DNA from: Phyllobates terribilis
Lineage: Eukaryota
Assembly (NCBI RefSeq): GCF_046119375.1
Contig: NW_027362916.1
Span: forward strand, 186,001-250,000
Reading direction: 5' to 3'
DNA length: 64,000 nt
The translations under genes were made by a program, and so were the position numbers. This document shows positions 3,326 through 44,546 of this stretch, piece after piece (the first letter of the stretch is position 1; the number at the start of each line of letters is the position of its first letter). Under the pieces are notes generated by a model. That model ran no database searches. It was given only the letters and a program-made list of their open reading frames with translations, and was not told the DNA's origin.

Positions 3326-3880
3326 TGTTGCCCATACAGCCTGATTAGTCGTCCAGGTCATAGTTGGCGAAAACATTTTTTGGACAGATTTCTTTTTGTA
3401 AAGAGGCATCATTTGCTTTTCGCTGAGGGTCTGACTGCTGGTGCCGCTGTTCCATTGGACAGAACCTGGCAGAGGTCATATTACATCGGCCACTTTCGGA
3501 AGTAGACTGGGGAACCGGGTTTTCTCTGCAGGCTTTATTGTATGGCATAAAGCCCTGCAGCTCCAGCAAAATAAACACAGCCTTACTGGCAAAGCTACAA
3601 AACAAAAGATAAATGATAGGACAGGTTCGCCCACACAGGTTGTAGCCAAGCCTTTAGCTCCTTCCTGAGCTATGGCATTCCAGTCTGGACACCTTGCCTC
3701 TCCAAACTCAACAGAAAAAAAATAGTGACTGAGCATTTAAGCTTGCTCAGCATCACCCTGAGGGGAGGTAGGGTGAATGACTTCCCACCCTCTTTGCCAT
3801 TCACATAAAACCACACCCTTTAGGTGAGTTAACCCCTAATATATAACATGCTGGAGGAAATAACACCAGTGACTGTCACA
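3326..3880 (-). repeat. 3' LTR of the Gmr1-like element
   Basis: Begins TGTGACAGTC (minus) directly after the purine tract and contains AATAAA at about 3533-3538. The distal CA end (3326) is a best guess; no 5' LTR is available for comparison. Confidence 0.55.
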
Positions 3881-6800
3881 TATTCCCCCCCTCTGCCCAA
3901 AGCTGGGGGTTTGGGCACCTTCAGACACCAGACAGGGAATTCTAGACAGGGCATCAGCATTCCCGTGCAACTTCCCGGGCTTATTCTCCAGATGAAAATT
4001 AAAGTCTTGAAGACCTAAGAACCATCTAGTTACCCTAGTATTTTTACCCCTCTTTTTCCTCAACCATCTCAAAGGGGCATGGTTTGAAACCAATTTAAAC
4101 TTCCGGCCTAGTAGGTAATATCGCAGTGTATCTAAGGCCCATTTTATGGCTAAACACTCTTTTTCTACTATTGCGTAGTTCTTCTCGCAGGACAAGAGCT
4201 TCCGGCTCAGATAGAGAATGGGATGTTCTTCCCCATTTATCTCTTGAGAGAGTACGGCTCCTAGGTCAACCTCTGAAGCATCTGTCTGGACCAAAAATTA
4301 TTTTTTTAAAGTCTGATGCGACCAGGACCGGCTGCTTACACAGTGCTAGCTTCAACTGTTGAAACGTGGTCACTGTTTCCTCCGTCCACTTCACCATGGT
4401 TGATCTGGTGCCTTTTTAGAGGTCCGTAAGTGGCGCAGCCATCATGGCAAAACTTGGGATAAACCGCCGGTAATATCCCACCATTCCCAGGAACGATCTC
4501 ACTTGCTTCTTGGAGAGTGGTTGCTGACAGGTCTGGATTGACTCCACTTTATTGACTTGTGGGTTTATTTTGCCTCTCCTGATGACATAGCCCAAGTACT
4601 TGGCTTCCTCTTTTCCAATGGCACATTTTCTTGGATTTTAGTAAATCCTGCCTTCCTCAGAGCATCCAGAACGGCCTGTAGTTTAGGTAGATGACTAGCT
4701 CAGTCTGAGTTAAAGACTACAGTGTCACCAAGATAGACTGCGGCATACTCCTTATGTGGGGCTATGATCTGATCCATAGCCCTCTGGAAGGTGGCTGGGG
4801 CCCCCTGTAGTCCAAACGGCATCCGAGTGTATTGAAAGCACCCATGAGTTGTCGAGAAAGCTGTCTTCTCCTTGGCCATCTGGGACATAAGGATCTTCCA
4901 ATAGCCCTTCGTCAGGTTGAGGGTGGTAATATACCTCGCTGGTCCCAGCCTCTTGATGAGCTCGTTGACGTGAGGCATCGGGTATGCGTCACACTTGGAC
5001 ACCTCATTCAGTCGGCGGTAGTCGTCACAAAACCTCCATTCTCCGTTGGGTTTTGGCACAAGGACGATGGGGCTCAACCATCCACTTTGACTTCTCTATC
5101 ACGCCGAGGTCTAACATCCTCTTCACCTCGGCCGTGATCACCTCCTGGCGTGTTCAGGAATCCTTTACGGCTTCAGGTTCACCATTACATGTGGCTAATT
5201 TAGCACATTATGTTCTACCACCTGGGTATACCCCAGCAGCTCTGAGAACAGGTCCCAATTCTGCTGGAGCAGTTCTCGACACTTTGCTTCTGGGCTGGCA
5301 AAAGGGTCTCCGCTATAGTGACATCTTCAATCTGGCCTTTGGGAGTGGCTGCCAGACAAGGAGTTCTCACGGGTTCCCAATCTCGCCACGACTTGAGCAG
5401 GTTTACATGGTACACCTGGTCTGGTTTTCTTCAGCCAGGCTGATGGACTCTGTAGTTCACTTCACTGAGTTTCTCCACCACCTCATACGGGCCTTGCCAC
5501 TTGGCCAGGAGCTTCGTTTTAACGGTGGGAATGAGAACCAGAACACGATCCCCAGGCTGGAACTGTCCCAGTCTTGCCGACCAGTTAAAGACCCTCGCCT
5601 GGGCTTCCTGCTCCTGAAGGAGATGTTCCTTCATGATGGGCATCACCTTCGCCATTCTCTCCTGTAACTGGGCGATATGTTCAATGATTCTCCGGTGGGG
5701 TGTGAACTCGGCCTCCCAGGTTTCCTTGGCAGTATCAAGGAGACCTCCTGGATGAAGTCCATACAGGAGCTCAAATGGAGAGAAGCCAGTGGAGGCTTGA
5801 GGAACTTCTCTGATGGAGAAAAGTAGAAATCGGAGCAGGTAGTCCCAGTCTCGCCCCATCCTTTTCAACGACCTTCTTGAGCATCGCCTTTAAAGGTCTT
5901 GTTGAAGTGTTCCACTAGGCCGTCCGTCTGCGGATGGTAAACTGAGGTCCGAATCTGGGCAATCTGAAGGGCTCTGCATAGCTACTTCATCGCTCTTCTC
6001 ATGAAGGGGGTTCCTTGGTCTGTCAAAATCTCTTTTGTCAGACCTGTCTGTGCAAAAATATGGACCAGCTCTCGGGCTATTCTTTTACTGGATGAGTTCC
6101 TTAGGGGTACCGGGTCGCATAGGCCATGACCACCAGGATATATTGGTGGCCCCAAGCCAGTTTAACTAAGGGACCCACGAGGTCCATGGTAATCCTCTGA
6201 AATGGGTCCTCTATCATAGGTAGTGGAACCAAGGGACTACGGAAGTGGGAGGTTGGCACGGTTATCTGGCTGGTGGGGCAGGACCTACAATAGTTTAAGA
6301 TTTCCCGGTAACATCCTGGCCAATAGAACCTCCTCAATATTCTCTCCTGGGTTTTCTCAACTGTAGCTGTCCCGCTAGAATATGTGAGTGGGCCATTTCT
6401 AATACCCTCCGACGGTATGACCCTGGAACTAACAGCTGTTGCACTACCTCTTCACCTTTTAGTTAGTCACCCAGTATAAAAGCTCCCCCTGAACTGGAAA
6501 GTGTGGGTACCTGGTTTCCACCCCCGGCACTTGAGCAATACCATTACAAACAGTAACATTGTCTCACGCCCCTTTCAAAGTCACTTCCTGAACTTGAGCT
6601 GACCCAAAGTTCTCTCCGGGCACCTCCAATTCCGAGAGGTCGGCCACCTTGGTCACAGTCTGGTCCTCGTCGCCAGAAAGGACACAGTGGGAACTCATCC
6701 ACTTCCGATGTCGACTGGGATATTTCTCTCGGGTCCTGGCTTTTGTCCACGTAACTCAGTCTCGATCCCTTCCCCCACAAGTCCCAGAACAAGAGAAAAT

Positions 6801-7211
6801 CGCGCCCCAATATGACGGGATGCATCAGGTCCTTGACCACCCTGACCTCATGGGATTGGGCGCCACAGTCTGTTCCAGCTGTCACTCTGGCCACCGGGTA
6901 GTTCTTGGCGTCCCCATGTATGCAGCAGACGCCCACAGATTTAGTAGGGGTCCAGACTCCCATAGTCCAACAACCCCAGGACCATCACCCCATTAACAGA
7001 AATGGCACACGCCTGCGGCCCCTCGCTGGGTTGACAGTCCACACTGCAGGCTGGGTAAGCATTATAATGCAGCGGCTTGTGGCATTACGGTAGTTGTCCA
7101 GGATGCGTTTTGGCTGACTATGTACCTCCCCCTCAGGTGACTGGTCACATGACTGTGACATAGCACAGGTCCTGTGCACAACTAGAGGATGATAAGGCGG
7201 ATGCAGAGCAC

Positions 7212-8756
7212 ATGCACCAAGTGGTTGAGACCACTCTGCAGGACACCCATGATGAAAATGGTGACCTCCGCAGAAAGACCCTAGGTCTGGAAGCTCAGGT
7301 GAAGGAGTTGCAGACGTTCTGTGATAATCTCCAGAGGGCAGAGACATGCCTTAAGGAAAGAATCAGCAAGGTGGAAGCTGAGCGGAAAAAGATGGAGGAG
7401 TCTATCGGAGAAGCCACAGACCAGGGCCAGGAGTTGGCCATTGGAGATGGGAGGTATGAAACAAATACCTACTCGAATAATGCGAGCTCGGATGATTCGG
7501 TGGAAGTAGGAGCCGAGATCAAGGAGCTCAAGGAGTCGCTACAAGCCCATTTGAAGCAAGAGAAGCTTGAAAGACTGGCTGTTGAGAGCCGAGTGGGCGC
7601 ATTGGAGACAGAGAAGTCTGAGAGAACTCTACTGTTAAAAGAGCAGTTGAAGCAGGAAGAGCTTCAGATATGGGCTGCTGAGAGGCAAGTAGCTGAGCTA
7701 GAGGAAGAAGTTTTCGAGCTCAAAGGTCGCCTAGCAAAGTATCACTCAGTGAACGAGGCCTCCTTGGAGAAGGAAAAGGGCAAACCAGTTGCACTCACTC
7801 CCTTATACCATGAGAAGGTGGACCTGAGGAGAGCCAAGAGAGTGTTAACAGAAGATAAATATGAAATGGAAGTGGTAAAGACGAAAATTTGTGAATTTGT
7901 AGCTGTGAGTCAGCTCAGGGGAAGTATACAGGGTGAAGAAGCTGAAAGTCAGTTGCCCCTGAAACCTGAGCTAGATGATCTTTTGGAGACCACTGGTGAG
8001 ACAGAAACCTCTCGGTACAAGTGCCTCATAGATGTACCCGAGGATTTGAGAGAATGCACCAGTGAGTCTGTGCATGAAGAGTTTAAGAAGGCCGTGGGAG
8101 CCTGTGAGGTGTACTCGACCTCAGAAGCTAAACAGCTGGTGGTCCTGTCCACGACTGAAGTCACAGTGAAGAGGGTGGCGATCCTAAGTGACATACACTG
8201 GCGATATATTCACACGAAGCGGTTTCTCCGGTTGAAGACGGAACAAGCCGTTAGACAACTGGAGCTTATGAGAAAAGCTCACAGTCTGCGGGAAGAGGTC
8301 ATCCGGGTGCCTCATGTTCTGGTGAGAAAGCTCATTGGGAGAAATGGCCGAGCCATGCAGATGATGGTAAAGAAGTCGGGTGTGATGAGAGTAAGCAGTC
8401 CACGTGATCGACAGGACTGGATACCAGATGAAGACGGCATGGTGTCATTCTCCGCTGTAGGAACGGAAGAAAGTCTTGCATATATACGCATGCTGATGGA
8501 GTACCGAGTGACCTACCTGCGAGAGGTAGAACAGTTGAATCTCGCTAGACTGCGAGTGGAAAGACAGAATCGCCTGAGCAGCAGAAGGTGGCAGCTGTCT
8601 AGAAATTGTGAGACCAGACAGAGAAAGGGCCCCCTAAATAACAGAACAGCTACAGCTGAAGTTAGGGACCTATCAAGATGTCCTGAGAGTAGTGGGCATG
8701 GGTTTAGAGGTAGTGAGACCTCCAGTAACTCAGGTTTGAGAGGCCCATACAAATGA
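7212..8756 (+). CDS. fxr1-like: Intronless 514-aa ORF: coiled coil plus FXR1-derived KH0, KH2 and NES-region fragment (KH1 absent)
   Basis: Segment 8016-8576 aligns by eye with recalled FXR1. KCLIDVPEDLRE..HEEFKKAVGAC vs KCTVDVPEDLRE..HKDFKKAVGAC; TVKRVAILSDIH vs TVKRVNILSDMH; KLIGRNG..KSGVMRV vs KVIGKNG..KSGVVRV; EDGMVSF..VGTEES vs EDGMVPF..VGTKES; YLREVEQL vs YLKEVEQL. The frame is open upstream to the deletion junction at 7181, so the real N-terminus is probably lost. Confidence 0.85.
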   Translation: MHQVVETTLQDTHDENGDLRRKTLGLEAQVKELQTFCDNLQRAETCLKERISKVEAERKKMEESIGEATDQGQELAIGDGRYETNTYSNNASSDDSVEVGAEIKELKESLQAHLKQEKLERLAVESRVGALETEKSERTLLLKEQLKQEELQIWAAERQVAELEEEVFELKGRLAKYHSVNEASLEKEKGKPVALTPLYHEKVDLRRAKRVLTEDKYEMEVVKTKICEFVAVSQLRGSIQGEEAESQLPLKPELDDLLETTGETETSRYKCLIDVPEDLRECTSESVHEEFKKAVGACEVYSTSEAKQLVVLSTTEVTVKRVAILSDIHWRYIHTKRFLRLKTEQAVRQLELMRKAHSLREEVIRVPHVLVRKLIGRNGRAMQMMVKKSGVMRVSSPRDRQDWIPDEDGMVSFSAVGTEESLAYIRMLMEYRVTYLREVEQLNLARLRVERQNRLSSRRWQLSRNCETRQRKGPLNNRTATAEVRDLSRCPESSGHGFRGSETSSNSGLRGPYK

Positions 8757-8832
8757 CCCAATAGAGTATGGGACAGTACGGAGTCTAACCGGACCTTAGA
8801 TACCAGGGTGTGTGAGTCATTCTGCGGTATTG

Positions 8833-8949
8833 ACCGCTGGGAGCAGGGGAGGTCTGACAAGGTTACGACTGACCGCTGGGAGCGGGGGAGGTCTGACAAG
8901 GTTACGAGCGACCGCTGGGAGCGGGGGAGGTCTGACAAGGTTACGACCC
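8833..8949 (+). repeat. 39-bp tandem repeat x3 in the 3' UTR of the nested LTR element
   Basis: GACCGCTGGGAGCGGGGGAGGTCTGACAAGGTTACGACT repeated three times. Confidence 0.9.
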
Positions 8950-9144
8950 GGAAATGTGACTTGACGAAGTCAGTGACAATGACAGATGGTAGGTCCCTAA
9001 AGGAATGGGCTAATGTCGTTGGCTAATGTTCCAGGGGCTGAGCAGCGCAATTGTCAAGTACATGGTCTCTGTGTGAACTGGGGGTTATAATGTGATTGTG
9101 TATATTGTGTGTTAAACGCCACAAGTTTGAACAGAGGGGGGATA

Positions 9145-9840
9145 TGTAATGCAGCAGCTTGTGGCATTATGGTAGTGGTCCAGGATGTGTTTTGGCTGAC
9201 CATGTACCTTCCCCTCAGGTGACTGGTCACATGACTGTGACATAGCACAGGTCCTGTGCACACAGAATGTCTGATCACATGACTGTGACATCAGCACAGG
9301 TCCTGTGTGCATTGGAAGATATAAAAACCCTGGTAGTTTTGAGACAGGGGGGGTAAGGCGTGAGGCCTGTTCCCGTGTGGGGCACCATCAGCCTGGAGAG
9401 GCTTAGTGAGGCCTAGAGAGGCCTGGTGAAGCCTGAAAGGCAGAGGCTGGATGTTGGCTGTGTAAACATACCAGTAGCCTTGGATGGTACGAGGGCTGGA
9501 GACCCTCATCTGGGAAGCCGTAAAGCCACAGCGGTGGCCGAACAAACCTAAAGCAGCTAAAACCCGGCGAAGGTAAAAACACTGATTGATGTGGACATTT
9601 ATGTTGTTGCCTAGCTGAGGGCTGTATCTGGAGCTAAGTGGACGTGTCTGTCGCTGGAAAGGCTCTTGGACATTATGTGTATGATATGTCGGCGAGCCAC
9701 TGAGATGGACTCGGTTATGAGCGGTTTATGATAAATAATAAACTGCTGGACTGTGAAATACCGGAAGGTGTTGCCTGGTGTGCCTTAATTTACCCGGTGC
9801 AGCGAGTATCTCCCAGCATGATGACTAGCGCTGCCTTACA
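9145..9840 (+). repeat. Complete 3' LTR (696 bp) of the nested element
   Basis: TG...CA ends, TATAAAA at 9320-9326, AATAAA at 9737-9742, internal duplication of about 47 bp at 9225-9310. Confidence 0.88.
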
Positions 9841-12800
9841 GCATAATGTGAACCTTGTCTGCCTAGGCTGCAGTCCATTGACTCAACAGATGTATGACAC
9901 TGGGCAGCCACGTGTCCTGGATTGTGACACGGCCAACAGATTACATCCTTAACAACAGTCCTTGCGGCACCTTCAGTGGAAGTGGGACGCCCCCCCAGTT
10001 GTGGCTCTGAACCCCTTCCGTAGTAAACCCACCCCCTTTTGGGCACTCCAGTACAGGGAGGGATTTTTCAACCATTTGGTAGCTCTCTACCAGACCCACA
10101 AGGTCGTCGGTGTTCCAAGGGTTGCCCTGGGCAACCCTGATCTGCACTGGCCTGGGTAGGGAATGGATGAACCTGTCCATCACCACATGCTCAACCATCT
10201 GGGCAGGAGAGGAAGACTGTGGCTGCAACCACATCTGGACTAGATGTAGCAAGTCAAACATCTGTGAGCGTGGAGGTCTGTCGCCAGCATACGCCCAGTG
10301 GTGGACCCTTTGCGCTTTGACAGACAGTCACTCCTGAGAGTGCCAATATCTCGGTTTCAATTTGGCGTATTCCTTTGCGTCTTGTAAAGTCAGATCATAA
10401 TAGGCCTTCTGCGGCTCCCCGGGCAAATATGGCACCAAAACCTCCACCCACTGCCCCAGCGGCAATCTCTCCCATTCCGCCACCCTCTCAAAAACAGTCA
10501 GGAACGCCTCAACATCATCCCCCGGGGTCATCTTCTATAATGCTCTCCTTACTCTCTCCAGTAGGTAACTAATTAAAAATAGTTACCTACAGGCCAGCTA
10601 TTTAAAACTGTGGTTGTCCGTCACACGTATCACATATCACTGCGGTTCAAATCCAGCCATTTGTACTGAACGTGGAAAATATATAAAATGGGCAAGGTGC
10701 GGGGCAAGAGACGGGGAAGTGGACGTGATGGTGATGATGGTGCATGCAGAGGACAAGGACAAGGCCATGGGCTAGCTGAAATTGTGCCACAACAAACACC
10801 CACATCTTCTCGCTCGACCTTCCTGTGGCAATTAATAGGGGACCGCAGAACAGCACTATCGAACAAAGATCAGTGTGAAAAGGTTATTGGTTGGATAGCA
10901 GATTCCATGCTTCCAGTCACTTAGCCACCACCACCCTGTCTGCCACACAGTCAAGTCTCAGTAACCGTGAGTCTGGACCGCATATTCCTCACCCTGATCC
11001 TCCTTCCTCCCACCATTCCGAGTGCCTGGAGACAACTGATCCCACACTTGGACAGTCTGAAGAGATGTTCACTATTCCATTTATAGAAATCGGGCCTCTC
11101 CCCCGGTCCACTTGAAGCGGGGCAAGAGGAGATCGCATGTAGCAATGCCCAAATATTTGAGCAGCCACGGTCACACGAAGGCGACGGTGGGAAAGTGTCA
11201 CAAGAGGTGGACGATGATGAGACACAATTGCCAGAAAGTGAGGAGGAGGACCAGGGTGCAGAATTGGAAGACGAGGTGGTGGATGATATAGTAACTGACC
11301 CAACTTGGCAAGAGAACATATAGAGCGAGGACAGCAGCACACGGGGGGGGGGGGGAGGCATAGCACCACAAAAGGCAGGAAGAAGCAGTGTGGTGGCCGC
11401 AGACAGAAGGCGGGCAACCGTTCCCCGTAACATCAACATGACGGACGTTGCCAGTACAACTGTTAGGTCTTTCCGAGTCTGGTTGTTTTTTAACCCCTTA
11501 ACAACATGTGACGTACTAATACGCGTCTGTGCCCTGGGCTTTAAGAGCCAGACCCGTATTAGTACGTCATGGCGATCGCGTGCGCACACAGGCTGTGAGA
11601 GTGCGATCGCCGCCAGGTGTCAGCTGATTGTCACAGCTGAAACTCGGTACTATGTGCAGGGAGCAGTCAAGCACCGCTCCCAGCACATTAACCCCCGCGA
11701 TGCTGCGATCGAAGTCGATCGCAGCATTGCGGTGGCAAGGGGAGGTGATCGCAGATACTCACCTCCTCTTCCGGCTTCCAGCGCTGTCTGCCGTGGCTTC
11801 CAGGATGTTGCCATGACGACCCAATGTCGTCATGACAACATCCGGGTCACCAGACAGCAGGAAGATTTTTTGGACATGCGCAGTGCATCTCCAAACTATC
11901 TTCTCCCTGTCCAGCGCTGACAGCCTGCATGGCACAGGGATGGTGCTGCATTCCTGTGCCATGCAGGCGATCAGAGAAAAAAAAGTGAAAGTCCCATAGT
12001 GGGACAAAGTAATAAAGTATAAAAACTATCAGAAAGTGAAAAAAAAATAAAAAAAAAAAATTGCAAAAATATTTTTTAAAATAATCCACCAAAAATAAAA
12101 ATATAATGTACCCGTCAATAAATATTATTATACAAAAAAAAACAATAAAAGTACACATATTTGGTATCGCAGCGTCCGAAACAACCTGACCTATAAAACT
12201 GTCCCACTAGTTAACCCCTTCAGTGAACACGGTAAAAAAAAAAAAAAAAACGAAGCAAAAAACAAATGCTTTATCACCATACCGCCAAACAAAAAATGGA
12301 ATAACACGCGATCAAAAAGACAACTATAAATAAAAATGGTACCACTGAAAATGTCATCTCGTCCCGCAAAAAACAAGCCACCATACAGCTCCATCAGCCG
12401 AAAAATAAAAAAGTTATAGCTCTCAGAATAAAGCGATGCTAAAAAATATTTTTTTCTATAAAATTGCTTTTATTATGTAAAAGTGCAAAACATAGAAAAA
12501 CTATATAAATGTGGTACCGCTGTACACGTACTGACCCGAAGAATAAAGCTACCATATCAATTTTACCACACGCGGAACAGAATAAAAAAAAACAAAAAAA
12601 ACAATTCCTGAATTGCTGGCTTTTGTTTATTCTGCCTCCCAAAAAATCGGAATAGAAAGCGATCAAAAAATGTCACGTGCCTGAAAATGGCTCCAATAAC
12701 AACGTCAACTCATCCCGCAAAAAACGAGCCGTCACATGACTGTCTGCCAAAATCTGGAAAAATTATAGCTCTCAAAATATGGCGATGCAAAAACTAGATT

Positions 12801-15281: not shown

Positions 15282-18200
15282 TTACGGGGAAAGTCCACCT
15301 AACCACGGACAAGTGCTTCTGGGCAGGGACGGACCTTGGGACGGAACACGTCCAAACAATATTTTTGCTTTAGGAGCAGTTCGTTTTTTAATGCTTATTT
15401 TGTGACTTTGATTTTCCTTATTAGTCAGTAATGAATGAAAAGACAGGACCTGTTTCAAAGGATCTTTGCTGTGAAGAGATGATGGTATATCTGGAGTAAT
15501 GTCATTCGCTTCAATTGTATCCTGTGGGATCTCAAGATCATCAGATTTAAAAATTGCAGATGTCAGCTGTCCCTCTGATCTCCTGGTACAGTCATCTGCC
15601 AAGGATAAAACAAATTATTATATTTTGAATAAAATATCCTTGAATTTTATATTTTTGAACATTTCTACTTAATGTGATTGTAGAAATGGCAAGTTATTTA
15701 AAAATGTTAAATTATTCTCCAAGACAATGACAGTTCACAGTCTAATAGAAAACCTCATAGGATGAACCAGTAGAGCGTGGTGTCCAACTGATTGTTCATT
15801 CTGCCTCCCAAATATGGAATAAAAAGCCACCAAACAATGTTATGTAGGTGAAATAATACCAATAAAAACTTCTACTCATCTCACAAAAAACAAGTCCCCA
15901 CTCAGGTTCATCATCTGTCAGTGGAAAACCAGAAGTTTCCACATTATTAGTGGCTCAAAGGCTTTTGAAAAGCAACATGGCTTCCATAACCCAATCCAGC
16001 AATATCCGCTCTCCCAAAGTCAAATCCCCCCCACACTTCTGAGCCTTGCAGTGCGCCCAAACCACATTCAGCATCCATGTATTTGGCATTACTATAGTGA
16101 GAAGAACCCACTTAATTTATGGTGTGTGTCTCCTGGAGCACAATCTGGACACTATGTGTTGGACAATAAAATGGTCTATTTGCAATTTTCACTCTCAAAC
16201 ATCCCCATATCAAAGTTTAAATCACGCCCCTTTCACCTCATTTAAACTAAATCAATAAAAAAAAACACACACATATTTGGTGTCGCTGCGTTCAGAATCG
16301 CCCGACCAATATAAAGAAATAATTAATCCGATCGGTAAACGGCGTAACGAGAAAAAAATGCCAGAATTATGTTTTTTTGGTCGCCGCAACATTGCAATAA
16401 AATGCAATAATGGGCGATCAAAACATCGGATCTACCCCTAAAATTGAATCAATAAAAACATCAGCTCGGCGCCCAAAAAACTAATCCCTCACTCGACCCC
16501 AGATAACGAAAAATGGAGACGCAACTGTGAAATTGCATTTTATTTTGCAATTTAACCGCACTTGGATTTTTTTCTCCCCACTTTCTAGTACATGATATGG
16601 TAAAAGCGAAAAATAAAAAAAGTTATGGCTCTGGGAACAAGGGGAGCAAAAAACGAAAACGCAAAATGCTTTGGTCATGAAGGGGTTAAAGACTACCAGG
16701 GAGTTACACACTTATAGTGAGGCCGGCCGATCCCACCACAATCAAACTATCAAATCAGAATGAATGTGTATTTATCGCAATGTAATGCTATCGCAATCCT
16801 GTTTGAAGTTAGTTGGTTTTAAAAGAGATTGAAAAGTCAGGATAAAGAGAAACTCTGTAGTTATTGTACAGAAATTCACACTTGGCCCTCATTGTACATT
16901 TAATGTTGTCGATAATAAAAGTGAAGTTTGGCCAGAAAGACTGGACCTGGTCTTGTAGGGACCATATGAGCACATTCAGCAGCACAGAAGGGAGAGAAGG
17001 TAGATTCATCCAATAAGATATCAGGGATCTAGGAAGCCAACAGCATCATTACCCTCCACTTTCTCTACAGGCCCATCACAATATTTTTCTTCAAGTGATT
17101 TTCTAGCTTGTCAGCACATTCTAAGTACGCTGTCATTCGGCTTTATAGTTTACAGATCTGGGCAGGTAACGGTCAGCGTCTCCTAATCCCAGGGGGTAGG
17201 TGGATCCTCCAGGTTGTAAGTTCTATAGAAAAGGGCTTTCAATGTCCACAGTCATTTGAACAGTTTTGGGTGGAGGAGAATGTTGTGATCTAGAGGCAAA
17301 ATGGTGATCACACGATTGTGATACGGCCGGACTACACCACTGATAAAGCAGCCACAGCCGGTGACAGAGAAGAATCTGTGACTTCTCTGCATTTAGTGGT
17401 TACTACTCACCTGGGTGGTCATATGTAGGAATCTCCTCTTTAAACCGCTCATCACCCCTCACATATGTCTCTGTAGTATTAATATGGGTCAGATCTTCAC
17501 CCTGAAACAAATATTGTAATAGTCACAGACAGATGGAGAAGTCCCATCTATGATCAGCTCTAATCCTGCCATCTCCACCGTTCTCATTACACAAGTATAA
17601 AACATATAATACTGGTGGATAAAACAAGACTGAGCACAAGACCTTCACAGCCGTCTACACATCATAGGGGAGATCTCATGACACCTTCTCTCCATCTACC
17701 TGATGATCCTGAGGAACATTGGGGTCTCCTTGTTTAAAGTCCTGTGGAAGAAGAGGACGGGGACATCTCTCTGGTGTTGTCCTCTTACTGGATAGATCTG
17801 GAGGAAACACATACAGGGACTGAATTCATTCTTTACATACAGATAATTATAGGCCGTGTGTATTTAGTCCTGTCTATTACCTGGTGATGTGAAGGGCTGG
17901 GGAACCTCCATCATGATGTCCTTGTACAGATCTTTGTGTCCTTCTAAATACTCCCACTCCTCCATGGAGAAATAGACAGTGACATCCTGACACCTTATAG
18001 GAACCTGACACATACAATGATACCATCATCCCCCCGATCCCTCCATAGTGTTACTGTATAATGTCCCAGCATTCCCAGCAGTGTCACCTCTCCAGTCAGC
18101 AGCTCAATCATCTTGTAGGTGAGTTCTACGATCTTCTGGGCATTGATGTCCTCATGTATCAGGGGGTGAGGTGGAGGCCATGTGATTGTGCTCAGGGGTC

Positions 18201-18474
18201 TTTCCCATCCCTCAGACACAGGGTCCTGACAGCGCTCACTAGAGGTCTTCTTCACTAATGTGTAATCCTGGTTATGGAGAGACACATTAATAAATCTCAC
18301 TTCAGACATTTCCAGAGCCCTCACCTCTCCAGTTCTGTCCATCTGTTATTCCCATAGATAAGAATGATGTAATGTGACGTCATCAGAATCTCTCACCTCT
18401 CCAGTAAGCCGGAAGAGGATCTCTAGGGTGAGGTGGAATATCCTCTCCACCATCTTGTCTCTGTCCATATCCAT
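15282..18474 (-). CDS. FAX/KRAB-like zinc-finger gene copy 1, lacking the C2H2 array (potential 294-aa KRAB-only product or pseudogene)
   Basis: Exons 18474-18397, 18267-18088, 18004-17881 (KRAB-A-like [15 protein letters not shown]), 17797-17700, 17501-17411 and 15595-15282, all with GT-AG and consistent phase. Homology to copy 2 ends at about 15364 (KRTAPKAK), then reads into hAT antisense sequence to a stop. Confidence 0.8.
16205..16685. mobile_element. Partial piggyBac-type MITE in the last intron of copy 1
   Basis: Ends GAAGGGG-TTAA (16686-16689), resembles 12100-12700 internally, and is absent from the paralogous intron of copy 2. Left boundary approximate. Confidence 0.6.
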
Positions 18475-18780
18475 CTTTGATGGATAAATCAGGAAAATTC
18501 TCTTATATAGAAGATATTCACTGAGAGGATTCGATATTGTAGAGACCTAAATGAGAAGAAGATGAGCCGATGTAACAAGTAGATGTAAAAAAGATTAATA
18601 AATACTGTAAATTAAAGAGATATTCATTACATGTGACATGAGAAATGAAATACCTACAATCGCAATCTTAAGGCTTATATTCATCATATCAACCCAAATA
18701 TAACAAGTAGAACAAAAAATAACATATGATAGTAATAAGACAACACAGGTAGGAAAACGGGGGCACACCCGGTATACATA

Positions 18781-22269: not shown

Positions 22270-23605
22270 TGTTACGTAAGAGGCATAATGGGGGCATTAC
22301 ACTGTGTGGGGGCATCATACATACTACATAAGGGACATAATGGGACATAACACTGTGTGGGCATCATACATCCTGCATAAGGGGCATAATGGGGGCATTA
22401 CACTGTGGGGCATCATACATACTGCATAAGGGACATAATGGGGGCATTACACTGTGTGGGGGCATCATACATCCCGCATAAGGGGCATAATGGGGGCATT
22501 ACACTGTGGGGGGACATCATACATACTGCATAAGGGGCATAATGGGGGCATTACACTGTGTGGGGGCATCATACATCCTGCATAAGGGGCATAATGGGGG
22601 CATTACACTGTGGGGGGCATCATACATACTACATAAGGGGCATAACACTATGTGGGGGCATCATACGCACTGCATAAGGGGGGCATTACACTGTGTGGGG
22701 CCATCATACATACTGCATAAGGGGCATAATGGGGGCATTACACTGTGTGGGGCATCATACATCCTGCATAAGGGGCATAATGGGGGCATTACACTGTGGG
22801 GGGCATCATACATACTGCATAAGGGGCATAAAGGGGGCATTACACTGTGTGGGGGCATCATACATACTGCATAAGGGCATTACACTGTTTGGGGGCATCA
22901 TACATACTGCATAAGGGGCATAATTTCGGCATTACACTGTGGGGGCATCATACATACTACATAAGGGGCATCATACATACAGCATAAGGGGCATAATGGG
23001 GGCATCATACATAATGCATAAGAGGCATAATGGGGGCATTACACTGTGAGGGCATCATACATACTGCATAAGGGGCATAATGGGGGCATCATACATACTG
23101 CATAAGGGGCATAATGGGGGCATTACACTGTGTGGGGGCATCATACATACTGCATAAGGGGCATAATGGGGGCATTAGACTGTGTGGGGGCATCATACAT
23201 ACTGTATAAGGGGCATAATGGGGGCATTACACTGTGGGGGCATCATACATACTGCATAAGGGGCTTAATGGGGGCATTACACTGTGGGGCATCATACATA
23301 CTGTATAAAGGGCATAATGGGGGCACTACACTGTGGGGGCATCATACATACTGCATGAGGGGAATAATGGGGGCATTATACTGTGGGGCATCATACATAC
23401 TGTATAAGGGGCATTACACTGTGGGGGCATCATACATACTACATAAGGGGCATAATGGGGGCATTACACTGTGTGGGGGCATCATACATCCTGCATAAGG
23501 GGCATTACACTGTGGGGGGCATCATACATACTGCATAAGGGGCATTACACTGTGGGGGCATCATACATCCTGTATAAGGGGCATAATGGGGCATTACACT
23601 GTGGG
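22270..23605. repeat. About 50-52-bp minisatellite in the putative first intron of copy 1
   Basis: Unit GGGGCATAATGGGGGCATTACACTGTGTGGGGGCATCATACATACTGCATAA, about 26 variant copies. Confidence 0.92.
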
Positions 23606-23801
23606 GTCAGTAAAGGGGTCCTGTACTATGAGAACAATACGTTTCCTCCCTTCCTGTCTCTATAGTTGGGTCGTATGTATCTATTACAGGAAACAGAACA
23701 AAAACCTTATGATTCTTATAAAGGGGCAACACAAGACCCCAAAAGAGTCTCCGTGCTAAAGGGGTTAATGCCCCCTGCGCCCAGTAATGGGGTCTCCACA
23801 T

Positions 23802-24001
23802 ACCTCCACCTGCAGAGCCGCCACCACATATATGGCTGCTCTGTGCGCACAGGAGCTGTGATGAGGTCACAGGAGGGGAGGAGTCAGGGGTCACATGATC
23901 AGGGGCCTCAGTGGATGCAGGACTCTGCTGTGCTGGTTGTCATGGTGCTGGATGAGCTGAAGTTTATGTGTGGGGTCAGGAGGGGTTTACAGTGTGGATG
24001 T
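23802..24001 (-). promoter_or_regulatory. Putative first exon / promoter of ZNF copy 1
   Basis: Near-identical block in all three paralogues, always between the CpG VNTR and a GAG|GTATGT donor (GT at 23803-23802) oriented toward coding exon A about 5 kb away. Confidence 0.55.
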
Positions 24002-25093
24002 AGCAGAGCCGCGTGTGTACGAGGTGTACGGAGCAGAGCCGTGTGTGTACAAGGTGTACGGAGCGGAGCCGCGTGTGTACGAGGTGTACGGAGCGGAGCC
24101 GCGTGTGTACGAGGTGTACGGAGCAGAGCCGTGTGTGTACGAGGTGTACGGAGCGGAGCCGCGTGTGTACGAGGTGTACGAAGCGGAGCCGCGCGTGTAC
24201 GAGTCGTGCGGAGCCGCGCGTGTACGAGGTGTACGGAGCGGAGCCGCGCGTGTACGAGGTGTACGGAGCAGAGCCGCGTGTGTACGAGGTGTATGGAGCG
24301 GAGCCGAGCGTGTACGAGGTGTATGGAGCGGAGCCGTGTGTGTACGAGGTGTACGGAGCCGAGCCGCGCGTGTCCGAGGTGTACGGAGCAGAGCCGCGCG
24401 TGTACGGAGTGGAGCCGCGCGTGTACGAGGTGTACTGAGCGGAGCCGCGCGTGTACGAGGTGTACGGAGCGGAGCCGCGTGTGTACGAGGTGTACGGAGC
24501 GGAGCCGCGTGTGTACGAGGTGTACGGAGCGGAGCCGCGTGTGTACGAGGTGTATGGAGCAGAGCCGCGTGTGTACGAGGTGTACTGAGCAGAGCCGCGT
24601 GTGTACCAGGTGTACGGAGCGGAGCCGCGTGTGTACGAGGTGTACGGAGCGGAGCCGCGTGTGTACGAGGTGTACGGAGTGGAGCCGCGTGTGTACGAGG
24701 TGTACGGAGCGGAGCCGCGTGTGTACGAGGTGTACGGAACGGAGCCGCGTGTGTACGAGGTGTACGGAGCGGAGCCGCGTGTGTACGAGGTGTACGGAGC
24801 GGAGCCGTGTGTGTACGAGGTGTACTCGAGCTGTGTGTGTACGAGGTGTACGGAGCGGAGCCGCGTGTGTACGAGGTGTACGGAGCGGAGCCGTGTGTAC
24901 GAGGTGTACAGAGCGGAGCCGCGTGTGTACGAGGTGTACGGAGCGGAGCCGTGTGTACGAGGTGTACTCGAGCTGTGTGTGTACGAGGTGGACGGAGAGG
25001 AGCCGCGTATGTACAGAGCGGAGCCGTTTGTGTACGACTTGTACGGAGCGGAGCCGCGTGTATACGAGGTGTACGCAGCGGAGCTGTGTGTGT
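24002..25093. repeat. CpG-rich 30-bp VNTR (about 36 units) upstream of copy 1
   Basis: Unit GAGCGGAGCCGCGTGTGTACGAGGTGTACG, 5 CpG per unit. Confidence 0.97.
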
Positions 25094-25096
25094 ATG

Positions 25097-25354
25097 AGGG
25101 CTACCTCTTGAAGCTCATCAAGAGAATGCCAAGAGTGTGCAAAGCAGTCATCAAAGCAAAAGGTGGCTACTTTGAAGAACCTAGAATATAAGACATATTT
25201 TCAGTTGTTTCACACTTTTTTGTTAAGTATATCATTCCACATGTGTTAATTCATAGTTTTGATGCCTTCAGTGTGAATGTACAATTTTCATAGTCAAGAA
25301 AATGCAGAAAAATCTTTAAATGAGAAGGTGTGTTCATACTTTTGGTCTGTACTG
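25097..25354 (+). mobile_element. 3' end fragment of a Tc1 element
   Basis: YLLKLIKRMPRVCKAVIKAKGGYFEE..I* is a Tc1 C-terminus, followed by a TIR ending TTTTGGTCTGTACTG and TA (25355-56). Confidence 0.8.
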
Positions 25355-32045: not shown

Positions 32046-32154
32046 TGTTTTTATTAAAACATTTTCAACATTCTGAACATGAAAAAGGCTTTTCCCCTCT
32101 GTGAGTTCTCTGATGTTTATTAAGAGTTGATTTCTGTGTAAAACATTTTCCACA

Positions 32155-35100
32155 TTAAGAACATGAAAAGGGCTTGTCCCCTGTGTGGGTTCTCTGATGT
32201 TTGTTTAGACTTGATTTCACTGAAAAACATTTCCCACATTCTGAACATGAAAAAGGCTTCTCTCCTGTGTGAGTCCTCTGATGTTTAAGAAAATCTGATT
32301 TATGGCTAAAATATTTCCCACATTCTGAACATGAAAAAAGCCTCTCACCTGTGTGGATTCTCTGGTGCTCAACAAAATCTGATCTATAGCTAAAACAGTT
32401 TCCACATTCTGAACAGGAAAATGGTCTCTCCCCTGTGTGGGTTCTCTGATGTCTGATAAAACTTGATTTCTCTGCAAAACATTTTTCACATTGTGAACAG
32501 GAAAAAGGCTTCGCCCCTGTGTGAGTTCTCTGATGTTTGATAAAACTTGATTTCACTGCAAAACATTTCCCACATTCTGAACATGAAAAAGGCTTCTCTC
32601 CTGTGTGAGTCCTCTGATGCTTAAGAAAGTCTGATTTATGGATAAAACATTTCCCACATTCTGAACATGAAAAAGGCCTCTCACCTGTGTGGATTCTCTG
32701 GTGCTCAACAAAATCTGATCTATGGCTAAAACATTTCCCACATTCTGAACAAGAAAACGGTCTCTCCCCTGTGTGAGTTCTCTGATGTCTGATAAAATTT
32801 GATTTCTCTGTAAAACATTTTCCACATTCTGAACATAAAAAAGGCTTCTCCCCTGTGTGAGTTCGCTGGTGCTTAACCAAATGCGATTTCTGGTTAAAAC
32901 ATTTTCCACATTCTGAACATGGAAACGGTTTCTCCCCTGTGTGAGTTCTCTGGTGCTCAACAAGAACCGATTTACGGTTAAAGCATTTCCCACATTCTGA
33001 ACAGGAAAACTGTTTCTCCCCTGTGTGGGTTCTATGGTGTCTGATAAACTTTGATTTTTCTGTAAAACATTTCCCACATTCTGAACATGAAAAGGGCTTC
33101 TTCTCAGTGTGAGTTCTCTGGTGACTAACAAGGTATGATTTCTGGTTAAAACATTTCTCGCACTTGAAACAAGAAAATCTATTCTCTGCTGTTTGAATTT
33201 TTTGATGTTTAAGAAAATACTTTTTGAGGGGAAAACTATGTGCAACTGGCTTCTTTGCTTTAGGAGCAGTTCGTTTTTTAATGCTCATTTTGTGATTTTG
33301 ATCTTCCTTAGTAGCCGGTAATGAATCAGAAGACAGGACCTGTTTCAAAGGATCAGATGACAGATCTGTGCTGTGAAGGGATGATGGTATATCTGGAGTA
33401 ATGGCCTTCACTTCAATTATATCCTGTGGAATCTCAAGATCATCTGATTTAAAAATTGAAGATGTCAGCTGTCCCTCTGATCTCCTGGTACCGTCATCTG
33501 CCAAGAATAAAACCAGTTATTATTTTTAAATAAAATATCTTTGAATTTATATATTTTTGTACATTTGTACTTAAAATGTCTGCAGAAATGGCCAGTTATG
33601 TAAGCTATTGAATTATTCACCAAGACAATGACAGTTAACAGTCTAATAGAAAACCTCATAGGATGAACCAGTAGAGTGTGGTGTTCAACTCTTTGTTTAT
33701 TCTGCCTCCCAAAAATGGAATAGAAACAACAAACAATGTTATGTAGGTGAAAATAATATCAATGAAAACTTCTACTCATCTTGCAAAAAACAAGTCCCTA
33801 TTAAGATCCATCATCTGTCAATGGAAAACAGAGTTTTCCTCATTATTAGTGGCTCCAAGGCTCTTGAGAATCAACATGGCTTCCATAAACCAATCCAGCA
33901 ATATCCACTCTCCCAAAGTCATATCTCCCCTCGCTTCTGAGCCTTGTAGCGTGCCCAAACCACATTTAGCATCCATGTATTTGGAATTACTATGGTGAGA
34001 AGATCCCACTGAATTTACGGGGTGTGTCTCCTGGAGCACAATCTTGGCACTATGTGTTGGGTAATAAAACGCCAAATGTGTAATTTTCACTCTCAAACAC
34101 CCAGTACGTGCTAATTTCAGGAAAGTGCCAGTGGAATCAAAATAGTCACTACTCCTATAGATTAATTCACTGAGGGTTATAATTTCCAAAATGGAGTCAC
34201 TATGGGGATTTCTACTGCTCTGGTTTTTAGCAATTTTGTCATATTAGGGCTTCTGCAAATGGAGTGTCCCATCTCATCTGGGTTCTGCTCCTGAGACGTC
34301 TGCTTCTCTCACCAGAAGCCGCATTATTTATTCTATCGGAGGCTCTGGTGATGGAGGAGACGTCAAAACCAAAAGCGTTGGGCATCACATGCTCTGTCCA
34401 GCCACTAAGATAAGGGTTGCTGGGACCAGTAGTATTGTCCAGTCCGGCAGAATGGGTGTATCCAGCTGGAGTAATCTGCTCCCTGCTTCAGCCAACTGGA
34501 AAGCATCACACCCTACTGTGAGTATAGACAATAACACATCTACTGAAATTATCAAACTCAACAGTCTTCATCAGTAAAAAATGAGTAATTAGTGGTGAAA
34601 CCTCTCTGGGGTAATTAGAGTATGGGGCTCGGTGGCTCTTGGAAATCGAAACTATCGTAAGGACCAATATTTTCTGTCAGATGAGTTTCATGAAGAAATA
34701 TTAAGCATTCAAAGAGAACTTTTTATAATAGTGCAGAGCTGAGGTGTCTTAAATTTAGATCTCGGGCATTGGGAAGATAAAGAATAAAAAAAATATGTTA
34801 CATCCCAAACAACAACATATGTATGAGGGGAGAACTCCATTACTAAACCAGAGTTGCACTCATTTATGGTGGACCATTGAAACTACTATGAGTCCTGACC
34901 AGAAGAGTAGAGAAAGTATTAGTGCCCCCATTTCAGGAGAGATTGTGCAGTAATCTGAATTCCTGAGGATTGAAAACATAATGGAATTTATGACGTGGAG
35001 TGAATCCATGAAACCAGGGCTCGAGCCATGCCAACACATCTCCTGCAGGCGTGAATAAATGTATATTACAGCCATCAGCCACGCACAGCTTAGAGATATA

Positions 35101-39492: not shown

Positions 39493-40449
39493 CTTTGATG
39501 GGTAATTCAGGAAAATTCTCTTAATATAGAAGATCTCCACTGCAAAGATCCGATATTGTAGAGACCTGAATGAGAAGAAGATAAGCCGATGTAACATCAT
39601 AAAAATCATGTGTAATAATACAATTACAGGAAACAATAAGGGAAAACATATCAGGAGATAGCCAGTGATTGGGAGCATGGAGAAAATGTCTTAGTCAGCA
39701 ATTCAACTTATGTTCCAGTCCATACAAGACTAGAGAATACAATATCTACACGTTCTAAGTTACTCACTGCTATGGCAACCTAATGAGATGTAGGAATCAC
39801 AAGTTCGTTGGAACTGACCAGGAAATACAGAGACTGGCAGGGGACCTAAGCAGCAATGATATTTTTATTATTTTACAACATTCTGTTTTTTTCATTGACA
39901 TCTACTAATAAAAGCTATATATTTTAGGCCACAGACAACAAGCAGTTTCTTCCTCGGAGTCTGCACCTGATTATGTTTCTCATAGACTTATCTTCCATAA
40001 CGCTAATTCTTGTGTTATTTACTGACACTGCAATCGGCATTAGCAATACTGCAGGAGATATTCATTACATGTGACATGAGAAAAAACTACTTCATGATCA
40101 GGATGACATCTTCATCTTCTACTACGGTTGTACAAACATATTTGGCCAGAGTCTGTTGCTAACTACATTACCTCTGGCCGTCTACATGAATGTTTCCCGT
40201 CTTCCCCGGACTGTAATCTTCAATCACGTTGGATCTCATGTCTGATTCACACACAGAAGTTTGAGGCATTTATAAAAGCTTGTTTGTAAGAACACAAAGA
40301 CAGGAGGTATTTGATGGCAATGTCTCCATGTAAAGTGTTTTTTTCCTCTGGATATGATGGTTTTTAGGGGGGCATTTTCCCTTAGGCTTACATATACTGT
40401 ATTCCATGGAAAAAGAACAAAAAAACACATGTTAAAATATTTCAAAATA

Positions 40450-44428: not shown

Positions 44429-44546
44429 GTATCTACATTATTGTCCACAGCTGTTACGTCACTGTTCACACCACACAGAGACCCCAAAAGAGTCTCGGTG
44501 CTGAAGGGGTTAATGCCCCCTGCGCCCAGTAATGGGGTCTCCACAT

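Follow-up and report, generated by a model that had tools for sequence, protein, structure and literature searches.

What is an intronless reading frame with the RNA-binding domains of the fragile-X protein family doing between the ends of an LTR retroelement, and how might it have come to be there? In the window, by which we mean the whole 64,000-nucleotide stretch of Phyllobates terribilis DNA analysed here, positions 7063–9840 form an LTR-bounded insertion nested in an unrelated and decayed Gmr1-like Ty3/gypsy element (Table 1). We consider it probable that this insertion is a dead, 5′-deleted copy of a dendrobatoid family of non-autonomous LTR elements that carries a mosaic of host genes, the product of which would serve the element as an RNA-binding protein.

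The insertion and its surroundings

The structural hallmarks originally predicted for the insertion, namely a GCAT target-site duplication, a polypurine tract, a TG...CA 3′ LTR and a matching 5′ LTR remnant, were all confirmed, and TG...CA termini with inverted repeats (10 bp in the 3′ LTR, 9/10 matching), a 4-bp duplication and a polypurine tract together identify an LTR retrotransposon. The 3′ LTR, which begins TGTAAT and ends CTTACA, is the one complete member of the pair; the 5′ LTR retains only its first 118 nt, begins TA and matches the start of its partner at 94–95% identity (7/118 mismatches, K2P 0.063, BLASTN E=1e-47). This stub is without TATA, R and U5 (the TATAAA of the full LTR is at LTR position 176, past the end of the stub) and abuts the cargo gene directly, with no primer-binding site between them in the window copy. 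The further proposal of a self-contained unit did not hold, because the window copy is 5′-deleted and decayed. No Pfam match to gag, PR, RT or IN falls within this copy, which is non-autonomous; the predicted lack of PR applies to the window copy only, since its long relatives start with a protease-like region.

Table 1. Features of the cargo element and of its Gmr1-like host element in the window; the cargo gene remnant is listed as a single part because it is broken.
Feature	Positions	Strand	Basis or remarks
Left target-site duplication GCAT	7059–7062	.	Identical 4 bases at 9841–9844, directly beyond both element ends
5′ LTR remnant, first 118 nt of U3 only	7063–7180	+	Aligns to 9145–9262
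Broken mosaic cargo gene remnant	7182–9148	+	Large 5′ deletion, four premature stops in 3′ portion
Cingulin-rod-derived segment, ORF aa 1 to ~88	7182–7475	+	True cingulins P0139, P0170 at 47–48%
Long helix and LONP1-derived segment, ORF aa 99–242	7506–7937	+	PDB human LONP1, E=1e-8 to 5e-8
FXR-type KH0, aa 264–353	8001–8270	+	Pfam KH_9; PDB 4qvz (FMRP KH0), E=4e-17; Foldseek
FXR-type KH2 with GxxG loop, aa 356–437	8277–8522	+	PDB 2qnd residues 63–144, E=1.6e-15
FXR C-terminal core / NES-like helix, aa 433–508 (weak)	8508–8735	+	Pfam FXMRP1_C_core, E=2.7e-3
39-nt × 3 tandem repeat, 13 codons each, in frame	8831–8947	+	TRF score 213, 94% matches
Polypurine tract AGAGGGGGGA	9133–9142	+	Two bases 5′ of 3′ LTR
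Complete 3′ LTR, 696 bp, TG...CA	9145–9840	+	TATAAA at 9320, AATAAA at 9737
Right target-site duplication GCAT	9841–9844	.	Pairs with 7059–7062
Decayed Gmr1-like Ty3/gypsy host element	3839–10531	-	Pfam; genes over several frames
SCAN-type gag and zinc knuckle of host element	9828–10531	-	Pfam SCAN, 5e-13
Protease-like region of host element	6547–7062	-	Position, homology, motifs
IN of host element	5434–6451	-	Integrase_H2C2, 1e-9; Integrase_p58_C, 4e-7
RT of host element	4703–5095	-	RVT_1, 3e-18
RNase H of host element	3839–4297	-	RT_RNaseH, 2e-34

The surrounding Gmr1-like element has its genes in PR-IN-RT-RH order on one strand, as taken from their coordinates, and the cargo element is inserted between its zinc knuckle and its protease-like region. 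The LTR of the cargo element shows no similarity to the host element, and an autonomous partner with the same LTR was found neither within the window nor by protein search. The protease-like region, in this element and in the long relatives of the cargo, is recognised by neither Pfam nor PDB sequence searches; it is named from its position, the homology between the relatives and this element, and its DSG / GRD-type motifs.

The architecture of the insertion also bears on whether it might be a one-off accident, either an FXR1 processed pseudogene made by LINE machinery or an assembly chimera lying beside a solo LTR. Only one cargo copy exists within the window, as such an accident would have it, but no A-run follows the cargo, the combination of poly(A), long target-site duplication and missing LTR that marks a LINE-type processed pseudogene is not seen, and the 4-bp duplication lies exactly outside matching LTR ends. 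Moreover, the same mosaic junctions recur in the independent assemblies of other species (P0001, P0086; 77–92% identity). An accident or artefact confined to this locus has a very low probability and is refuted, within the reach of these searches, by the relatives in other genomes.

Composition and decay of the mosaic frame

The intact ORF (7212–8756 (+), 514 aa, in a frame open over 7164–8753) represents only the 3′ portion of its gene, which extends about 290 codons further upstream in Phyllobates relatives. It reads as a mosaic of three genes, running from the cingulin rod through a piece of the LONP1 N-domain to an FXR1 module of KH0, KH2 and C-terminal region with KH1 missing. As in Bs1-type elements, pieces from several host genes, all of them intronless, share one frame in an LTR element without pol. 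The original prediction of a coiled coil fused to an FXR1 region is borne out for the intronless FXR-family module; a fusion with FXR1 as the sole host gene is not what we find, the coiled coil being cingulin- and LONP1-derived.

The cingulin parentage is clearest in the Phyllobates relatives, which are colinear with cingulin aa ~550–973 at ~60% along a stretch exceeding 400 aa. For LONP1 the secure core is aa 199–242 (7806–7937), with ~68% identity over 44 aa; it maps just upstream of the LONP1 AAA+ module and stops short of it, and the helix upstream of the core aligns to LONP1 weakly. The homology is statistically detectable in the window/Phyllobates branch only, where Phyllobates P0001 matches LONP1 at E=5e-11.

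Both KH domains of the FXR module were recovered, by different routes. KH0 is recognised outright by Pfam KH_9, the KH0 of FMRP (aa 269–348, E=4.5e-23, 81.9 bits where the cut-off is 24.2), whereas KH2 was found through PDB 2qnd, where the match is the KH2 half of an FMRP KH1-KH2 crystal, and Pfam KH_1 stays below its cut-off in the window copy (E=3e-3, 17.6 bits against 21.5). Similarly, FXMRP1_C_core scores 18.9 bits in this copy, under the cut-off of 29.6, and the tail is decayed. In the AlphaFold model pLDDT exceeds 90 across both KH domains, the modelled KH0 superposes on FMRP KH0 at 1.2 Å over 77 columns (Foldseek), and the predicted helix reaches aa 469, the remainder being disordered. 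The tandem Agenet (Tudor) domains are absent from the window ORF, and the cingulin- and LONP1-derived helices occupy their place. Alignment places the absence of KH1 at a clean gap between KH0 and KH2 common to the window copy and Ranitomeya P0002; Dendrobates and other Ranitomeya copies match over the KH0-KH2 junction in one stretch, and KH1 is retained in Anomaloglossus copies.

Which family member supplied this module can be answered with moderate support: its sequence points to FXR1 as the best-supported parent, in agreement with the claim that it resembles FXR1 better than FMR1 or FXR2. All of the top full-length database matches are FXR1; the window module is 53–55% identical to frog FXR1 across KH0 and KH2, 47–51% to FMR1 and 39–46% to FXR2; and it keeps FXR1-type residues where FXR1 and FMR1 differ. 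Tree placement agrees, with a bootstrap support of only 58% for grouping with FXR1 against 12% for FMR1 and 0% for FXR2.

Downstream of the intact ORF the gene has broken down. Five in-frame stops fall in the remnant, of which the one at the LTR edge is natural to the family and the other four are premature; no frameshift was detected across 7182–9148, and D. tinctorius P0093 aligns in a single frame across 7515–9146. The 39-nt triplication lies within the decayed tail, where the colinear sequence of the relatives is their arginine/glycine-rich tail. The window copy is a dead fossil that can neither be expressed from its own LTR nor move, because the bulk of the 5′ LTR, the primer-binding site and the ~290 N-terminal codons are gone and the four premature stops interrupt what is left.

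A dendrobatoid family and its apparent constraint

Far from being unique to this locus, the cargo has intronless, multi-copy relatives in five dendrobatoid species at the protein level (P. terribilis, D. tinctorius, R. imitator, R. variabilis and A. baeobatrachus), as the original prediction of a retrotransposon family would have it. The relatives, sampled as annotated proteins and hence biased towards intact ORFs, number from several to more than ten annotated paralogues per species and are spread over several chromosomes; in D. tinctorius a single 90% cluster has 11 members. Gene span equals coding length in P0001, P0002, P0090, P0093, P0233 and P0187. The LTR context comes from the window copy alone, in which LTRs, target duplication, primer-binding site and gag were looked for, and the multi-copy status of the family is a protein-level result. 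A literature search found no report of an LTR element with cingulin, LONP1 or FXR1 cargo, nor of such capture in frogs, in keeping with the original suggestion that no retrotransposon family with FXR cargo had been described.

The long relatives tie the cargo to Gmr1-like elements. In these proteins the cargo continues the frame of a protease-like remnant that has its homologues in such elements: the N-termini of P0090, P0093 and P0232 match the Gmr1-like protease-like ORF of the window (BLASTP 1e-13 and 2e-7; tblastn for P0232 aa 20–134). At the other end, their C-termini extend to the codons of the polypurine tract, where internal region and LTR meet in the window, and relatives from Ranitomeya and Dendrobates conserve this coding sequence at their C-termini. 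Among the long relatives read, the protease catalytic motif is intact in one only and has degenerated in most.

These ends also weigh on whether frogs recruited FXR1-derived retrogenes as a host gene family, perhaps as restriction factors or as parts of germ granules, that happens to lie amid or next to retroelement remains, with the window copy a pseudogenised member. Members are annotated as protein-coding in RefSeq, conservation spans genera, and some gene models carry introns or upstream exons (P0053 and P0061, P0053 being the one Anomaloglossus model looked up). Yet the copies are multiple in each genome, occupy different chromosomes and lie within the introns of other genes, their frame begins in protease-like retroelement sequence and runs to the polypurine tract or LTR edge, and the window copy owns an LTR, a tract and a target duplication. 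We therefore regard recruitment by the host as very unlikely.

The FXR modules of the elements form a single clade (bootstrap 100%), with a branching order that agrees with the species tree. These comparisons indicate that the FXR1 piece, spanning KH0 through the C-core, entered the family in a single event that predates the split of Anomaloglossus and Dendrobatidae; that dendrobatid copies, which carry the long helix, subsequently lost KH1; and that the Phyllobates/window branch has a recognisable LONP1 N-domain fragment, preceded by ~420 residues of cingulin rod, the outcome being a single intronless mosaic ORF. Downstream of the protease-like region, host sequence has replaced the family's enzymes, and it stems from spliced mRNAs, because gene span equals coding length in the six relatives and the colinearity with cingulin is so long. 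The pieces would have been joined by reverse-transcriptase template switching between element RNA and co-packaged host mRNAs.

Has the resulting protein mattered to the element? Its modules evolve ~10 times faster than host FXR1 (tetrapod FXR1s differ mutually by about 8%), and this speed, together with the loss of KH1, the decay of the window copy by 5′ deletion and premature stops, the degenerate protease motifs and the truncation of several relatives (including P0001, P0086, P0088 and P0089), would suit passive passengers, that is, host fragments caught by chance and multiplied along with their carrier, with a functionless protein and with intact ORFs only in the young or lucky copies that annotation picks out. 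Conversely, ORFs of 700–900 codons persist across lineages ~0.7 substitutions per amino-acid site apart, where neutral drift would be expected to bring many stops. Substitutions also avoid the columns invariant in host FMR1/FXR proteins: per-column conservation correlates between host proteins and element copies (rho=0.29, p=3e-5), retention is 0.68 for host-invariant columns compared with 0.48 for the remaining columns, and the GxxG loop is kept in 12/13 copies. Since long ORFs have come through this divergence and fold-critical KH residues, with the GxxG of KH2, are preferentially kept, we infer that the element protein has been under selection, and we find a passive cargo unlikely.

Possible roles and known parallels

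The protein would most probably serve the element as an oligomerising RNA-binding factor that combines a coiled coil with KH0 and KH2. It would coat the element's transcript or route it into FXR-type RNP granules, and protease, integrase and reverse transcriptase would be supplied in trans by autonomous Gmr1-like relatives.

A different role, put forward with the original prediction, would be that of a decoy, a dominant-negative mimic of host FXR1/FMRP that blunts Argonaute- or Piwi-linked silencing. KH0 overlaps the dimerisation region in FMRP-family proteins, and a module that retains KH0, KH2 and the weakly matched NES-like helix with neither Agenet/Tudor domains nor KH1 might resemble a truncated interferer; its rapid evolution is compatible with conflict. 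We nevertheless think this role quite unlikely: the preserved GxxG loop and the added long oligomerising helix point to direct RNA binding over mere titration, the pairing of such a helix with RNA-binding domains fits an element-serving protein at least equally well, and a benefit acting in trans on all elements would leave only weak selection in any single family.

Compared with host FXR1, the window module shares the folds of KH0 and KH2 along with the GxxG loop, and probably the NES-like helix; unlike it, the module is without Agenet/Tudor and KH1, has a truncated and decayed C-terminus and is fused to foreign helices. Compared with the Gmr1-like host element, the relatives' N-termini are homologous to its protease-like region, whereas the cargo family is without IN, RT and RNase H and the window copy without any element-derived coding sequence.

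Most documented cases in which LTR retroelements captured host genes come from plants (Bs1) and from retroviruses, and template switching is the accepted mechanism for Bs1 and for the oncogene-carrying, acutely transforming retroviruses. The closest precedent is maize Bs1, likewise a non-autonomous LTR retroelement with three host-gene fragments in one hybrid reading frame and with capture at the RNA level, which for the frog family is our inference. Bs1 is a low-copy element known from one genus; in contrast, an RNA-binding module makes up the frog cargo and has lasted and diversified through several genera. RNA-level capture by template switching, and the three host genes of Bs1, are described in PMC13317346 (citing Jin & Bennetzen, Elrouby & Bureau), and the cargo of this plant element, unlike that of the frogs, comes from H+-ATPase, xylan endohydrolase and glucanase genes (PMC13317346). 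Crocodilian ERVs have captured KIT-ligand or nectin3 mRNA (PMC4299795). Like the transforming retroviruses, they took up spliced host mRNA, usually at the cost of their own genes and sometimes as an in-frame viral fusion, and their cargo shows signs of purifying selection, to which we liken the conservation of the frog cargo. Those retroviruses carry one host gene each, for signalling or adhesion proteins, whereas in the frogs three host genes contribute to a cargo of the RNA-binding kind, carried by a probable Ty3/gypsy (Gmr1-like) derivative.

A retroelement-encoded protein in which a coiled coil is followed by RNA-binding domains (RRM and CTD) is LINE-1 ORF1p. The likeness would be a functional analogy only, with no homology between the RRM and CTD of ORF1p and the frog KH domains. 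LINE-1 ORF1p RNPs purified from mouse germ cells contain FXR1, FXR2 and FMR1 (PMC10289378). It is possible, and we put it forward tentatively as clearly less likely than not, that a Ty3/gypsy lineage dropped its own enzymes and built from cingulin, LONP1 and FXR1 mRNA a ‘coiled coil plus KH’ packaging or granule-targeting factor, kept by selection across dendrobatoids, and that this factor, of host origin, is the convergent equivalent of LINE-1 ORF1p or Gag.

A long-lived vertebrate family, spanning several genera, whose only protein is a three-host-gene mosaic centred on the RNA-binding domains of the fragile-X family would provide a new case in nature. It would illustrate exon shuffling by retroelements in animals, the gain by non-autonomous elements of a protein of their own, and the tolerance of the FXR KH0-KH2 unit to loss of Tudor and KH1 under fast evolution. 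In RefSeq, members are labelled ‘cingulin-like’, ‘FXR1-like’ or ‘restin homolog’, labels that would mislead gene-family and expression analyses in the giant genomes of poison frogs.

A mosaic reading frame of FXR, cingulin and LONP1 parts

The cargo of the LTR element studied here is an intronless reading frame, colinear with mature host proteins from three unlinked genes and carried in an element without pol. The original prediction had described it as an intronless coiled coil fused to an FXR1-like module; the RNA-binding half of that description stands, and the remainder has to be widened to include segments of cingulin and of mitochondrial Lon protease (LONP1). Profile searching recovers the FMRP KH0 domain at aa 269-348 (Pfam KH_9, E=4.5e-23), and PDB searches return FMRP KH0 (E=4e-17) as well as, from the FMRP KH1-KH2 crystal, its KH2 half (E=1.6e-15), with KH_1 and FXMRP1_C_core scoring under the Pfam cut-offs. 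In an AlphaFold model of the frame, whose mean pLDDT is 74, aa 13-76, 96-188 and 205-239 are predicted to form long helices. Two domains of KH type, aa 269-356 and aa 360-469, are modelled with pLDDT >90, and the modelled KH0 superposes on FMRP KH0 at 1.2 Å (Foldseek). When the element modules are aligned with host FXR-family proteins, the KH1 gap between KH0 and KH2 is the same in the window ORF and in P0002, an annotated Ranitomeya protein; the Dendrobates and other Ranitomeya copies give one continuous alignment to the window ORF across the KH0-KH2 junction.

The human LONP1 match (E about 5e-8) has a core of 44 residues, aa 199-242, with ~68% identity, aligned just upstream of the LONP1 AAA+ module. 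The Phyllobates relative P0001 matches LONP1 at E=5e-11; Ranitomeya and Dendrobates copies, searched as a single sequence and as a nine-sequence profile, do not retrieve it; the fragment may be old and decayed in those genera, or may belong to the Phyllobates branch alone. Residues 1 to ~88 match true cingulins at 47-48%, one from a myobatrachid frog and one from a caecilian, and in Phyllobates relatives the colinearity extends along cingulin residues ~550-973 (~60% over >400 residues). Since a stretch of more than 400 residues is expected to span several exons, it points to a spliced mRNA as the likely source of the cingulin part. A 1341-nt Logan contig from SRR32377442 (L001), with 77-87% nucleotide identity to window 7182-7431, was rejected as an element copy because it is colinear with true cingulin to residue ~1119; it represents real anuran cingulin, either a transcript or part of the gene.

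The carrier and the decay of the window copy

The element is nested within a decayed Ty3/gypsy element and lies on the opposite strand to it. The unusual order PR-IN-RT-RH combined with a SCAN-type gag is the hallmark of Gmr1-like elements. Over half of the Gmr elements of frogs are reported to give SCAN matches (PMC4131045). No LTR pair of this host element was found within the window.

Features of the nested LTR element and of its Gmr1-like host element (window positions)
Feature	Position	Strand	Remark
SCAN-type gag + zinc knuckle	9828-10531	-	host element
Protease-like region	6547-7062	-	host element
Integrase	5434-6451	-	host element
RT	4703-5095	-	host element
RNase H	3839-4297	-	host element
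Target-site duplication GCAT	7059-7062 and 9841-9844	.	flanks 7063-9840
5' LTR stub	7063-7180	+	equals first 118 nt of 3' LTR, 7 mismatches
514-aa ORF	7212-8756	+	open frame from 7164
39-nt unit, three in-frame copies	8831-8947	+	decayed tail, colinear with arginine/glycine-rich tail of relatives
Purine tract	9133-9142	+	upstream of 3' LTR
3' LTR, 696 bp, TG...CA	9145-9840	+	9/10 terminal bases inverted-complementary over ten
TATAAA in 3' LTR	9320	+	motif
AATAAA in 3' LTR	9737	+	motif

The 5' stub matches the 3' LTR at K2P 0.063 (BLASTN E=1e-47) and ends upstream of the TATA-box position, so the window copy is without LTR promoter, R, U5 and primer-binding site; self-BLAST finds no second LTR copy in the window. 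Divergence over the 118 sites alone implies an insertion age of ~10-30 million years at substitution rates assumed, not measured, for this clade (1-3e-9 per site per year).

P. terribilis proteins (P0001, P0061 and others) have ~290 further residues N-terminal to their homology with the window, which starts directly after the LTR stub. The Dendrobates tinctorius protein P0093 aligns in one frame along 7515-9146, its last position adjoining the LTR start, and in this frame the window copy holds four premature stops besides the natural family stop, with no frameshift detected along the aligned frame. In sum, the cargo gene has suffered a single large deletion at its 5' end, four stops and a single expansion that keeps the frame. 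The window copy is a fossil: its shortened 5' LTR, the deletion and the stops contradict the original description of a self-contained LTR unit.

Relatives, parentage and tempo

We describe the family from annotated proteins, with DNA-level data from the window copy only. A check for relatives shows that the cargo is not single-copy, with proteins in Phyllobates, Dendrobates, Ranitomeya and Anomaloglossus. In P. terribilis, P0086 and P0001 are 92% and 77-79% identical to the window ORF, and six 'cingulin-like' models also match, the loci lying on several chromosomes. Dendrobates tinctorius contributes P0092, P0093, P0232, P0233, P0253 and P0187 (from a 90% cluster of 11 members), Ranitomeya imitator P0002, P0090 and P0254, Ranitomeya variabilis P0088, P0089 and P0091, and Anomaloglossus baeobatrachus P0053, P0059 and P0094, which retain KH1 and more of the FXR1 C-terminus. 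Dendrobatid members with recorded gene spans are intronless, one of them sitting in another gene's intron; the exception is P0061, whose model has introns and which sits within another gene's span. The model of P0053 has introns as well.

The six P. terribilis models that RefSeq calls 'cingulin-like' (P0060, P0061, P0065, P0077, P0081, P0082) all have the element's cingulin-derived part in common and split at one shared residue into unrelated tails. A reading of this shared breakpoint as a recombination junction was dropped because at least one of the models, P0061, contains introns. The variable tails probably consist of exons to which a splice donor within the element is joined; each locus may supply its own downstream exons, and chimeric transcripts may result.

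The original prediction saw no protease, which holds for the window copy only: in Dendrobates and Ranitomeya, long ORFs (734-900 aa) have N-termini homologous to the protease-like ORF of the host element (BLASTP 1e-13 and 2e-7); tblastn places P0232 aa 20-134 on window 6748-7060, minus strand. In P0090 this region has a DSG motif and a GRD-type motif, both typical of retropepsins; the remaining long relatives have a degenerate form of the first. Motifs and position suggest that the region is a protease; it has no match in Pfam (E up to 10), in a PDB sequence search or in a PDB profile search. A word-based protein search for an autonomous partner with the P0093 protease-like region returned family members only. 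The C-termini of the long relatives end on or read through codons over the window polypurine tract, beyond which no cross-genus LTR homology was found at the protein level. Together, these C-termini and the protease-like N-termini put the cargo at the position of IN-RT-RH, with a protease remnant on one side of it and the 3' LTR on the other. Short Q/K/G/V-rich tandem peptide repeats, perhaps from the tail of a gag or of other origin, precede the protease-like region in P0093, P0233, P0090 and P0091.

A neighbour-joining tree of 192 KH0+KH2 columns covered 13 copies of the element together with 19 proteins of the host family (FXR1, FXR2, FMR1 and homologues from invertebrates). Of 500 bootstraps, 100% unite the element modules in one clade, which groups with FXR1 in 58%, with FMR1 in 12% and with FXR2 in 0%. 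The window module is 53-55% identical to frog FXR1, against 47-51% for FMR1 and 39-46% for FXR2, and the best full-length database matches are all FXR1. Identities and top matches thus side with the original choice of FXR1, but the bootstrap value does so less firmly, and FXR1 as parent of the module is moderately supported by these comparisons. Long-branch attraction alone could draw the element clade together; against this, the Anomaloglossus and dendrobatid copies share residues that are derived relative to all FXR1s in the protein alignment. Anomaloglossus branches first, then the window copy, then Dendrobates with Ranitomeya, an order matching what we take to be the species relationships, and vertical descent with amplification inside lineages fits.

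Mean distance is 0.69 among element modules vs 0.078 among tetrapod FXR1s, roughly a tenfold faster evolution. ORFs of 700-900 codons persist in lineages ~0.7 substitutions per site apart, column conservation in element copies correlates with that in the host family (Spearman 0.29, p=3e-5), and 12 of the 13 copies retain the GxxG loop of KH2. At host-invariant columns the R. imitator FXR1 residue is kept in 68% of cells, vs 48% elsewhere. ORF persistence, column correlation and GxxG retention argue indirectly for past purifying selection on the protein, as read from annotated proteins, which over-represent intact copies.

Proposed capture, possible role and surrounding sequence

We suggest that the cargo was acquired by template switching in the reverse transcription of co-packaged host mRNAs. 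Template-switch capture is known for LTR retrotransposons, Bs1 being an example in which fragments of host origin, likewise three, share a single hybrid frame (PMC13317346), and crocodilian ERVs with KIT-ligand or nectin3 provide vertebrate retroviral precedents (PMC4299795). Gene transduction by LTR retroelements is already known; the cargo, the carrier lineage and the persistence are unusual here. Full-text searches found neither FXR1 nor any KH protein as transposable-element cargo, nor such a family in frogs, with mention of either possible in the poison-frog genome papers PMC6278860 and PMC11152451.

In layout the cargo protein resembles LINE-1 ORF1p, a long oligomerising helix being followed by RNA-binding domains, and in mouse germ cells FXR1, FXR2 and FMR1 are themselves part of ORF1p RNPs (PMC10289378). 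On these grounds we favour a protein that would serve the element by RNA binding or RNP routing, while autonomous Gmr1-like elements would provide the enzymes in trans. We consider it less probable that the protein is the originally proposed decoy against small-RNA silencing, a passive passenger or the product of a host-domesticated gene family.

Nearly all of the window derives from transposons. Two Tc1/mariner transposase remnants with Sleeping-Beauty-type HTH and a separate Ty3-type gag ORF occupy 1003-1500, 35674-36441 and 59939-60886 (all plus strand), and several dispersed copies of another interspersed repeat relate 15364-18577 to 33254-34102, 38053-39596 and 54677-59052 (83-94% identity, both orientations). 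The same 52-nt and 30-nt satellite-like arrays recur, inverted and ~22 kb apart, at 22277-25099 and 47392-49733 (84-93% identity), with a third partial block at 44473-45008; these blocks may represent a single repeat-rich element present twice, or else the arms of an inverted structure of very large size. On the minus strand, 32055-33504 holds an open frame of 448 aa that encodes 12 C2H2 zinc fingers in tandem, with an 84-nt DNA period, probably the finger exon of a KZFP/SZFP-type gene.
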